A model generated the notes under the pieces. It was not told where the DNA came from and ran no database searches. It worked only from the letters and a program-made list of their open reading frames with translations. Shown piece by piece: positions 21,493-23,582 of a stretch of DNA of 25,992 nucleotides. Every line of letters starts with the position of its first letter. Position 1 is the stretch's first letter. The translations under genes were made by a program, and so were the position numbers. The stretch is from sequence record MT446416.1; one strand, 5' to 3'.

Positions 21493-22038
21493 TTATAGAC
21501 AGTTAAGTACTATGTCATCAAAAGTACTACTGTCAATGTTGTATTCATATAAAAATTTAAAATGTGATCCATAACGCATCATCAGATTAAACTCTTCTTC
21601 AGTATTAAATTTGTAATCATGAAGAGTTTCAAGGGTACATGTTAAACCTAAAAACTCAATAATTTCTGATGTTACATCATTTCCTGAATTGAAGTATTTA
21701 ACCCAAACACATTTTCCTTGTGGGTTGAATTTTCTATATTCTCCTTCTAGTTCTCCATTGACGATATGTGCTTTCGCACTGATTAGATTATTACTATAAC
21801 GCTCTTCGTAGTAGTTCCCATAACGAGCTTTAAGAATTGTAGGCTTCTTGGTTGGGAATAACTTAATGGAAGTTAATTCAAAACCGCACTGCAACTCTTT
21901 GATGTACGAAATACATCCCTTTTCTTTAATCACAACAAAACCAGTAAAATTCTCCTGGTCTTGGTTCTGATTGTCTGAATCAACAAATTCTAGTGTTTTA
22001 TAAGTGACGCTTTTAGATTTTTTAATAAATGACATCAT
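21493..22038 (-). CDS. hypothetical protein with a MORN-like repeat and an EEEFNL motif
   Basis: NGELEGEYRKFNPQG; start moved to ATG 22038 behind AGGA. Confidence 0.7.
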   Translation of the reverse strand: MMSFIKKSKSVTYKTLEFVDSDNQNQDQENFTGFVVIKEKGCISYIKELQCGFELTSIKLFPTKKPTILKARYGNYYEERYSNNLISAKAHIVNGELEGEYRKFNPQGKCVWVKYFNSGNDVTSEIIEFLGLTCTLETLHDYKFNTEEEFNLMMRYGSHFKFLYEYNIDSSTFDDIVLNCL

Positions 22039-22094
22039 TATTCCTATGGAAACATCAATGACTGTCCATGGCGTTGACTTCATCAACACCAGTC

Positions 22095-22125
22095 GAATTA
22101 TACACGCTTCGCATGTATAATTCAA
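22095..22125. promoter_or_regulatory. 13-bp hairpin containing a sigma70-like promoter on each strand
   Basis: GAATTATACACGC-ttc-GCATGTATAATTC; minus strand TTGAAT-17-TATAAT, plus strand TCGAAT-17-TATAAT. Confidence 0.55.
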
Positions 22126-22129
22126 CGAA

Positions 22130-22656
22130 AGTACTATGATTTGTTTTAATTAATATTGACGGGGTTTGCTTGAGCATATTTCATCCCCCCGCAGGGGAAA
22201 GAACAAAAAAGTTTGACGCTGGTGGCCTTCACATAGTTCATATCACGAATTCTCTTACGAGGCGAAAGCGGGTTGCTCTGTTTCTCTCTATCGCGGTTCT
22301 TGTAGCAACGGTCGTCGGTCTTAAACATCCCGACACATAATACAAATACCATATGACCAGTACTTGTATTTGATTTCACGAATTTTGGACGCAACTATTT
22401 TGTATAAATTACGACCGCAAATTTCTCATGAAATCTCCCTTAGATAATTGGTAAGGTGCGATCCTTATATGTCTATCGAGGAACTCTCTTTATCCTATTG
22501 GAGTTCTTTATACAGCCGCATTGCCGTGAGTGGTTCAAACTATGCCATCATCTAACGGGTTTCATTTGCTGTTCGTACTGAAAGGACTACTCATCTACCC
22601 TCTACTTTTCGAGTGGATTAGGCTTCAATCATTTCCATATGGAACCTTTCAGGATT
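22130..22656. ncRNA. candidate structured non-coding RNA or origin-like region, family not recognised
   Basis: Longest gene-free stretch, visibly more GC-rich, several hairpins, flanked by promoters. Confidence 0.4.
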
Positions 22657-22690
22657 AAAAAAAGGTGACAACATATTCTGCTGTCACCTT
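22657..22690 (-). terminator. intrinsic terminator overlapping a promoter start site
   Basis: AAGGTGACA-11 nt-TGTCACCTT followed by a T run. Confidence 0.8.
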
Positions 22691-22692
22691 AC

Positions 22693-22718
22693 ATTATATC
22701 ATAAACTTATGGTATGTC
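22693..22718 (-). promoter_or_regulatory. promoter GACA-N16-TATAAT with TGn extended -10
   Basis: Minus strand GAGACA taccataagtttaTGA TATAAT. Confidence 0.65.
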
Positions 22719-23582
22719 TCAGTTGTATTCTGTTTTTTCAGTGAAATTCGTTAAGATATCTGCACTTAAGCTTCTCATAACCTCAATCTTACTTGGCATG
22801 AACCTGTGCTTGTTTTTTACATACAACTCATCATCTTCAATGAAAGATGTGAACATGAATACCATATCTTCACGTGGAATTGAGAGAATATTACAGTTTT
22901 CATTTTCAGTAACAGGGGAATCCCCGTAGTACTTAGAGAATGCAGTACTTTGACGACCGATTATGATAGAATTTCGGATTAGAAAATTACTACAGTACTG
23001 AAAATCTTTGTAGTACTTGTCAAGGATATATGGCATTATCGCTTCTTTCACTTCTTCATATCCATTTGAACTATCAATTTCAGTACAATAATCTTCTCGG
23101 TCTTTTTTCCCTCGATGATTATCAAACTCGTACTCAAAGAATAAATTTTTATTTGATGAATCTGAATCATTTAAACCAACTGATCCACTATAGTATGAAT
23201 TTCGTGAATTTCTATCCTTCATTCGATCATCCGGGCATGATGCATACATAGAAATGTCATGTGTTGACGTACCGATATAAATTTTCTTAGTAATGTGATT
23301 GTACGCGATGTAATCATAATCTTGTACTCCAGTGAGCATTAACTGGAACATCAATTCATCAGGAACATCAATTAACGGGTACTCAAACTTCGAATATCTA
23401 CTACGACAGAAATTCTTTTCAAATGCTCGGTGTGCGATGAAATCTTTTAGATTTGTAATAGATTCATGCTCATGTGTATTACTGGTGCGTACATTGACAT
23501 TAGTAGACGAGCAATACCCTTCAGATTCTTCTGCGTAGACATAAAAACCCTTACTGTAGTCAACGATTAGATAAAGTTTCAT
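22719..23582 (-). CDS. hypothetical protein with a DELMFQL motif
   Basis: 287-aa ORF with GGAG SD. Confidence 0.8.
   Translation of the reverse strand: MKLYLIVDYSKGFYVYAEESEGYCSSTNVNVRTSNTHEHESITNLKDFIAHRAFEKNFCRSRYSKFEYPLIDVPDELMFQLMLTGVQDYDYIAYNHITKKIYIGTSTHDISMYASCPDDRMKDRNSRNSYYSGSVGLNDSDSSNKNLFFEYEFDNHRGKKDREDYCTEIDSSNGYEEVKEAIMPYILDKYYKDFQYCSNFLIRNSIIIGRQSTAFSKYYGDSPVTENENCNILSIPREDMVFMFTSFIEDDELYVKNKHRFMPSKIEVMRSLSADILTNFTEKTEYN

Follow-up and report, generated by a model that had tools for sequence, protein, structure and literature searches.

A predicted large pseudoknotted non-coding RNA family in Rak2-like jumbo phages and enterobacterial integrative islands

Our data indicate that a gene-free stretch of 680 bases in the Asteriusvirus (Rak2-like jumbo coliphage) sequence MT446416.1 holds a gene for an intricately folded non-coding RNA of roughly 500 nucleotides that matches no described RNA family. 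The RNA element lies on the minus strand, the same strand as the flanking genes, and is kept in four to five copies per genome in the Rak2-like phages. Full-length copies are also present in small integrative islands of enterobacterial chromosomes. Fifty-five non-redundant copies support 74 base pairs in 15 helices, four of which are pseudoknotted. The window analysed here is 25,992 nucleotides long, and the gene-free stretch lies at 22039-22718. The first-pass annotation described this region as a gene-free, hairpin-rich stretch, GC-richer than its flanks, and this observation is confirmed. Its interpretation, which offered an undescribed phage RNA of about 500 nt in the size class of ROOL-type RNAs, a sense/antisense pair or an R-loop-primed origin, is partly supported: the evidence supports the first alternative, whereas a sense/antisense pair is not supported and an R-loop-primed origin is not excluded. 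The annotation did not assign a strand, and the multi-copy nature, the pseudoknots and the copies in bacterial islands could not be seen from the window alone.

The 680-base query is 100% identical to Escherichia virus TH47 and 92-99% identical to other Asteriusvirus genomes such as 121Q, PBECO4 and phAPEC6, which are Rak2-like jumbo myoviruses of about 350 kb. All long ORFs in the window are on the minus strand. The element lies between two minus-strand genes, the upstream 22719..23582 (287 aa, hypothetical; 121Q gp415) and the downstream 21493..22038 (hypothetical; 121Q gp416). The downstream ORF most probably starts at the ATG at 22038, and the TTG start at 22125 proposed by the ORF finder is almost certainly too far upstream. 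The region is the only long stretch of the window without a plausible minus-strand ORF and the only gap over 300 nt that lacks a minus-strand ORF of at least 50 aa. GC is 0.37-0.43 inside and 0.28-0.37 in the flanks, a modest enrichment.

Absence of conservation in related phages had been named as grounds for discarding the idea, but the element is conserved far beyond its neighbours. A distant blastn search found the core (about 22150-22625) at 67-75% identity in other genera, including Mimasvirus (GAP32, CBB, XbC2), Eneladusvirus (Serratia BF, Yersinia fHe-Yen9-04, Erwinia phages), Salmonella 7t3/Munch and Xanthomonas XaC1, with 4-5 separate places in each record. Across genera the element is 65-69% identical, whereas the DNA of the adjacent protein gene is 41-47% identical. 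The window itself holds one copy. In 121Q we mapped four copies, at 192745-193422 (the orthologue of this window), 90332-90783 (after a sigma-factor gene), 247499-248041 and 326683-327149 (beside endonuclease VII), and all four fill annotation gaps or sit under doubtful small ORFs. A pattern taken from the most conserved block recovered 36 stretches from IMG/VR, 61 from metagenome contigs and 8 from bacterial genome assemblies. A tree of the 55 non-redundant copies showed that paralogue classes A-D are each shared by several genera, so the duplications are old and every copy has been kept. The copies lie at syntenic sites across Asteriusvirus, Mimasvirus, Eneladusvirus and relatives.

Homologues had also been proposed as a test of covariation, and this test came out strongly in favour of a folded RNA. 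A blind scan for complementary, covarying column runs found the same helices in three independent alignments. These helices were written as one structure on an alignment of 55 sequences and counted. Of 3938 cells, 94.3% form standard pairs, against 73.8% in shuffles (0 of 500 reach the observed value) and 31-41% when the partners are slid. Sixty-three pairs and 800 cells carry changes on both sides, and the covariation score is 0.537 against 0.174 in shuffles. Single-sequence folding energy is unremarkable (z = -1.47, not significant), as is common for pseudoknotted RNAs, and hairpin density alone would therefore not have been evidence beyond chance.

The 5' domain (22575..22652, minus strand, as for all parts below) consists of P1 (22652-45 with 22585-78), the variable hairpin P2 (22644-22633), P3 (22621-11 with 22602-22595) and P4 (22590-88 with 22577-75). 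The 3' strand of P1 lies in the loop of P4, giving the first pseudoknot. P1 has 6 of 8 pairs with double changes and P3 has 7 of 8, P4 is 100% paired with 2 covarying pairs, and P2 covaries in the column scans. The central domain (22452..22572) contains P5 (22572-68 with 22516-12), P7 (22521-19 with 22471-69), which crosses P5 to give the second pseudoknot, and the hairpins P8 (22506-01 with 22486-81) and P9 (22467-63 with 22456-52). P5 and P7 are 100% paired with covariation, and all 6 pairs of P8 have double changes. Invariant joining segments of this domain include GAAACCCGU, CACGGCAAUGCGGC and GAUAGACAUAUAAGG. P10 (22435-31 with 22376-72; region 22372..22435) has double changes in 5 of 5 pairs, is 97% paired, and encloses a variable arm that carries the module UACAAnAUAG..GCGUCCAAAAUUCG. 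This module is absent from some copies and is duplicated inside P16 in class D and island copies.

In the 3' domain (22237..22370), the loop (22357-51) of hairpin P11 (22370-65 with 22344-39) pairs 65 nt downstream with 22243-37 to form P12, the third pseudoknot. P12 has double changes in 7 of 7 pairs and is 99.5% paired. Hairpin P13 (22334-30 with 22318-14) is followed by P14 (22309-05 with 22276-72), which is 100% paired. P15 (22295-91 with 22248-44) crosses P14 to give the fourth pseudoknot, with double changes in 5 of 5 pairs, 98.9% pairing and 25 G.U cells. The domain also has hairpin P16 (22261-59 with 22254-52) and the invariant segments CGACCGUUGC and GAUAGnGAGAAACnGnGCAACCCGCUU. The long invariant segments between the helices are the signature of a compact, functionally constrained RNA. 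The fold is not yet complete, as P6, the box 2 hairpin and the 3' flank are still unresolved.

Six of the seven stems proposed in the first-pass annotation hold up. GTTGC/GCAAC is P14, GTCGG/CCGAC is P13, AATAC/GTATT is P11 and GAACTC/GAGTTC is P8, and all four covary across the 55 copies. The palindrome TTCCATATGGAA is the variable hairpin P2, and the CCCC/GGGG hairpin at 22185-22198 shows only C-G to U.G changes. The seventh, 'GC-GAAA-GC' at 22262, is not supported as a hairpin. On the RNA strand it reads GCUUUCGC and lies in an invariant joining segment, and its reading as a GNRA hairpin pointed to the wrong strand. The direct repeat TCACGAATT is present at 22243-22251 and 22376-22384 as claimed and belongs to an internally duplicated module whose role is unknown. 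The claim that promoters point into the region from both ends is half right, because the minus-strand promoter is conserved but the plus-strand site at 22074 scores only 9 of 12 and is not conserved.

The plus strand was considered initially as the RNA strand, from a G(A/G)AA 'tetraloop' and one G.T pair, but this reading was rejected. Within the supported helices, wobble pairs are G.U in minus orientation far more often than in plus orientation (G.U 122 against A.C 52), and the same trend was seen in other alignments. The minus strand is 33% A and purine-rich, as structured RNAs usually are. The positions of promoter and terminators also point to the minus strand. Comparison of the minimum free energy of the two strands did not discriminate between them, nor did RNAalifold energy.

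The predicted promoter (22693..22720) has a -35-like GAGAC (22720-22716), a 14-nt spacer and the extended -10 TGATATAAT (22701-22693), and it overlaps the stop codon of the upstream gene. The same G(A/G)(A/G)AC-N14-TGnTATAAT layout lies upstream of the phage copies in every paralogue class, whatever their neighbours, whereas the island copies and those of a fifth phage class ('x', as in XaC1) carry a TATACT variant of the -10. All nine TGNTATAAT sites in the window are on the minus strand. The start is inferred, not measured, to be near 22686. In class A copies of all genera, this one included, the promoter is followed within about six bases by a terminator-like hairpin (22690-22662) and a U-run (22661-22654), which lie before the first helix of the RNA. 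The order promoter, hairpin, U-run, RNA is kept in class A copies of three genera with different hairpin sequences, and the record of GAP32 annotates the equivalent hairpin as a terminator. It either ends the transcript of the upstream gene, forms the 5' hairpin of the RNA, or does both. The hairpin probably stops read-through from the upstream gene, but it should also stop much of the RNA's own transcription, and its role for the RNA is unexplained.

At the other end, box 2 (CGUCA, 22218-22214) is followed by a U-run (22209-22204), a likely 3' end or attenuation point. In class C, class D and island copies, a variable, covarying hairpin plus U-run, a canonical intrinsic terminator in minus sense, is inserted exactly here. 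Next comes a region (22150..22198) with a G-rich hairpin (CCCC UGCG GGGG, 22198-22185), then AUGAAA..CAAAnCnCGUCA, which is box 1 (22162-22158). The five pairs of the G-rich hairpin vary almost only from C-G to U.G (29 wobble cells), so it forms on the minus-sense strand, and box 1 is invariant. The RNA ends either at the U-run at 22209-22204 or beyond the G-rich hairpin and box 1, at about 22150; these ends are inferred, and the roles of the two CGUCA boxes are unknown. The 3' flank (22069..22126) has a hairpin GAAUUAUACA/UGUAUAAUUC (22123-22095), detected by self-match, with the loop motif GCGAAGCG, a small hairpin (22087-22073) and a TTGAAT-17-TATAAT promoter (22125-22097) for the downstream gene. 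Comparison of the flanks by eye, without a formal covariation test, showed different stems around a conserved ACGnAGUG loop motif, in bacterial islands too. For consensus folding of this flank the alignment was too gappy, and only the G-rich hairpin was recovered.

The element is not coding. Variability by codon position is flat at 0.52/0.53/0.53, against 1.14/0.99/1.24 in the upstream flanking gene used as the coding control, and many indels between orthologues are not multiples of three. The comparison with Rfam that had been suggested in advance was carried out with Rfam 15, which includes ROOL, GOLLD, OLE, HEARO, raiA, RNase P, tmRNA, group I/II introns and 6S. There was no hit in the window at the gathering score, and in 16 copies from phages and bacteria the only hits were an unrelated TPP riboswitch and STnc450, both elsewhere in the loci. 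A search with E up to 10 gave only chance-level hits in the window, DapZ on the terminator and Hatchet at E = 9.8, and no hit inside the element in five diverse copies. ARAGORN found no tRNA or tmRNA in the window. Literature searches on jumbo phage ncRNA, structured RNA covariation, Asteriusvirus/PBECO4/121Q, fHe-Yen9-04 and phage satellites found no description of the element, although the search on phAPEC6 transcriptomics was too broad to be informative, and genome papers on these phages do not mention ncRNA at all.

Copies in bacterial chromosomes were unexpected. All eight hits in bacterial genome assemblies are full-length, and they include the complete chromosome of Serratia fonticola GTA-SR07 and a 484-kb contig of Enterobacter chinensis. 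Islands of Serratia, Enterobacter, Silvania, Buttiauxella and E. coli carry the element. In five of the loci it sits beside a CI-like HTH plus S24 peptidase repressor. In four of those a serine or tyrosine integrase lies on its other side, and a Cro-like gene follows where this was examined. These islands are inserted at different chromosomal sites. In S. fonticola the element follows a serine recombinase and two ParB/RepB-like genes, next to rof and tilS. Two of 5426 complete E. coli genomes carry it, and in strain LR-29-1 it lies in an island of about 11 kb beside ffs, with a broken tyrosine integrase and the candidate defence genes PDC-M45A and PDC-M45C. No copies were found on plasmids. 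Most island copies cluster with phage class x, but the E. coli island copy nests inside phage class C, so transfer between phages and islands happened at least twice. BLASTP of all ORFs found no relevant protein shared by islands and phage, only an unrelated DUF4326 pair. The RNA is the shared element, and the islands also keep the promoter, the terminator and the 3'-flank hairpins.

We consider the minus strand of 22143-22701 to be a stand-alone gene for a large non-coding RNA with a core of about 450 nt and a total of about 520 nt including its 3' extension, one of four paralogues in this phage's genome and a member of a family not described so far. Its function is not established. The analysis itself establishes the conserved fold of at least 15 helices with its four pseudoknots and invariant junctions, the folding strand, the non-coding status, a constraint much stronger than on the neighbouring genes, the syntenic copies and the full-length copies in islands. 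The remainder is inference: that host sigma-70 RNA polymerase transcribes the gene early from the extended -10 promoter, that the transcript has one of the two ends given above, that it acts in trans as a protein-binding scaffold or ribozyme-like RNA in the manner of ROOL, GOLLD or OLE, that several copies supply dosage, and that the islands copy it because it engages a phage function which they exploit or block. We are highly confident that this is a structured minus-strand RNA element, but only moderately confident of the whole statement including the trans-acting role, which is an analogy with other large RNAs and not a result, although the complexity of the fold and the invariant junctions resemble RNAs that act as molecules rather than as mere transcripts. 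A missing transcript had been named as a point against an RNA gene; no transcript data of any kind were found, and promoter, start and end are predictions.

The main rival, which we regard as possible but unlikely, is an RNA-primed replication origin. In this view the promoter would make a structured pre-primer, as for ColE1 RNA II or the transcripts at T4 oriF/oriG, whose 3' part would stay hybridised to the template near the U-run, G-rich hairpin and AT-rich stretch and prime leading-strand synthesis. The 4-5 dispersed copies would be the origins of a 350-kb genome, and islands would carry a copy so that an infecting jumbo phage replicates and so packages them. The copies are dispersed at about 90, 193, 248 and 327 kb of 348.5 kb in 121Q, and all copies in every genome seen have one orientation. 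The layout of promoter, about 450 nt of structured RNA, U-run or terminator, invariant G-run hairpin, two CGUCA boxes, AT-rich stretch and hairpins with a conserved loop motif is kept even where no gene follows, and the 3' flank fits an origin-like layout as well as it fits an RNA tail. The phage encodes RNase H-type enzymes. Islands captured the element independently at least twice, as satellites do with cis-acting helper sites, and satellite-like islands moved specifically by a jumbo phage were reported in 2025 (PMC12595487). However, fifteen helices, four pseudoknots and long invariant junctions are far more than known primer RNAs need, and T4-type R-loop origins need only a promoter and an unwinding element. 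No conserved plus-strand promoter like that of RNA I was found, the only plus-strand site (22074) lying outside the RNA. No replication data exist, and neither a replication start at the 3' end of the transcript nor RNase H processing was examined. The GC-skew profile, proposed beforehand as a check for an origin, shows no switch at the site, although this is weak evidence in a phage. A broader and equally tentative possibility is that the RNA, either as such an origin or as an RNA bound by the phage replication or packaging machinery, is the handle that links jumbo phages to their satellites, copied by islands so that an infecting Rak2-like phage replicates and mobilises them.

Other explanations are much less likely. 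The two invariant direct CGTCA boxes, the conserved motifs in the flanks and the presence in islands might suggest a DNA-level packaging signal or an array of protein-binding sites with only incidental structure, but compensatory double changes in 63 of 74 pairs and the strand-specific G.U excess are signatures of a folded single strand and not of duplex recognition. Five hundred nucleotides would also be very large for such a site, and one genome would hold 4-5 of them. A long structured leader acting in cis is largely refuted. A same-strand gene does follow in this window and at two other loci of 121Q, but the downstream genes are unrelated between paralogue classes, a convergent endonuclease VII gene is the neighbour in class C, the CI-like repressor gene converges on the element in most of the islands, and the downstream gene here has a promoter of its own. 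A decayed coding sequence or small-ORF cluster is refuted for practical purposes. An 82-aa TTG ORF (22146..22394, minus) and small plus-strand ORFs exist, and several GenBank records annotate up to five ORFs there ('hypothetical protein x5'), but codon periodicity is lacking, indels break the frame and nucleotide conservation is higher than in real genes. The annotated ORFs differ from record to record and many records annotate none. Our finding also corrects annotation that places up to five invented small proteins on the element.

Large RNAs with many pseudoknots are rare, and each one found so far (ribosomal RNA, RNase P, self-splicing introns, tmRNA, OLE, ROOL, GOLLD) has taught new biochemistry. 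The present element is kept in several copies by a whole clade of 350-kb phages that infect E. coli, Salmonella, Klebsiella, Cronobacter, Erwinia, Serratia, Yersinia, Pectobacterium and Xanthomonas, and because the hosts include laboratory E. coli it is open to direct testing. Its presence in integrase-bearing islands gives a concrete candidate for how islands might hitch onto jumbo phages, a question raised only in 2025.

The closest known systems in kind are the ROOL and GOLLD RNAs (PMC12286853), which are large ornate RNAs of phages and prophages with stand-alone genes of about 500-800 nt, many covarying helices and unknown function. The present RNA belongs loosely to this kind in being longer than 400 nt, non-coding and rich in helices supported by covariation; neither abundant expression nor oligomer formation was measured here. 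It does not match their models in sequence or structure, occurs in Enterobacteriaceae and Xanthomonas jumbo myoviruses, has 4-5 paralogues per genome and is not next to tRNA genes. The tmRNA, RNase P RNA and group I introns are comparable in length (350-500 nt), with several pseudoknots and invariant junction nucleotides, but apart from the negative searches above the element does not interrupt a gene and so is not an intron. In the related jumbo phage PA5oct, RNA-seq found four lncRNAs at ORF-free loci of 236-619 nt that are transcribed during infection, two of them abundantly (PMC7318152), which shows that phages of this broad clade do make long ncRNAs. The two of similar size, ncRNA002 and ncRNA004, showed no homology by nhmmer at maximum sensitivity and lack the family's invariant motifs, although no covariance-model search was run. 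ColE1 RNA II and the T4 oriF/oriG R-loop origins share a promoter about 450-550 nt upstream of a U- and AT-rich zone, a structured transcript, a G-run and downstream hairpins, and T4-type phages use several origins, but the fold here is far more elaborate and the resemblance is one of layout only. For the cis-acting helper sites copied by phage satellites (P4 cos, cos/pac of PICIs) and for jumbo-phage-transduced islands (PMC12595487), there is no evidence that the islands described here are induced, replicated or packaged by Rak2-like phages, and the published islands are in Pseudomonas with no shared RNA reported. The similarity is that the same non-coding element is present in a lytic phage and in small integrative islands with integrase and repressor, which acquired it more than once.

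In the window, at 22654-22701, an extended -10 promoter is followed within about 6 bases by a terminator-like hairpin and a U-run. The same arrangement was found in the class A copies of five other loci (L006, L008, L010, L011 and L012), and the order is conserved across three genera although the hairpin sequences differ. This element may insulate the RNA from upstream read-through, form a 5' hairpin, or act as an attenuator. All nine matches to the extended -10 sequence TGNTATAAT in the whole window are on the minus strand, which is the coding strand, whereas shuffled sequences give about 4 on both strands together. These sites look like the early promoters of the phage, and several of them lie inside ORFs. 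Several of the deposited GenBank genomes that match the element annotate two to five small 'hypothetical proteins' on the plus strand across this RNA, for example in two of the class A loci, L011 (1335-1935) and L012 (1418-2152), and these are almost certainly artefacts. In the 121Q record, a gap of about 2 kb with no annotated gene lies at 135194-137161 (37195-39160 in the stretch L004), in a region of many tiny ORFs, and it is not a copy of this RNA by blastn.

A module resembling UACAAUAUAGAUCCGUCCAAAAUUCG (window 22380-22412 and 22244-22251) occurs once in the P10 arm, and a second full copy is inserted in hairpin P16 in class D and island copies (columns 575-615 of alignment A1). The repeat TCACGAATT pointed out in the first-pass annotation is the tail of this module. 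In the 3' flanks of all copies (window 22095-22123, and loci L007, L009 and L055-L062), hairpins with quite different stems share the loop motif ACG(A/T)AG(T/C)G. In classes C and D, a second hairpin is embedded in TTGACA...GGCAAAT.

The copy on L061, a 2.8-kb contig of a MAG labelled Clostridium sp. UBA10317, is nearly identical to the Buttiauxella and Enterobacter island type, and the contig is probably mis-binned enterobacterial DNA. Ordinary host features lie beside the islands at L056 5385-5481 and L058 4270-4326, namely a TPP riboswitch upstream of thiM/thiD and the sRNA STnc450. In the chromosome of E. coli LR-29-1 (L124, 3473213-3483557), an island of about 11 kb lies between ybaA and ffs and has a tyrosine integrase split by IS3, the RNA, a small serine recombinase, and genes matching the candidate defence system PDC-M45 (A and C), plus DUF4326. 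The DUF4326 protein is 42% identical to 121Q gp497. In the chromosome of Serratia fonticola GTA-SR07 (L060), the order is a serine recombinase, two ParB/RepB-like genes, the RNA, then two tandem rof genes and tilS, and this island architecture differs from the integrase, RNA and CI type seen elsewhere.
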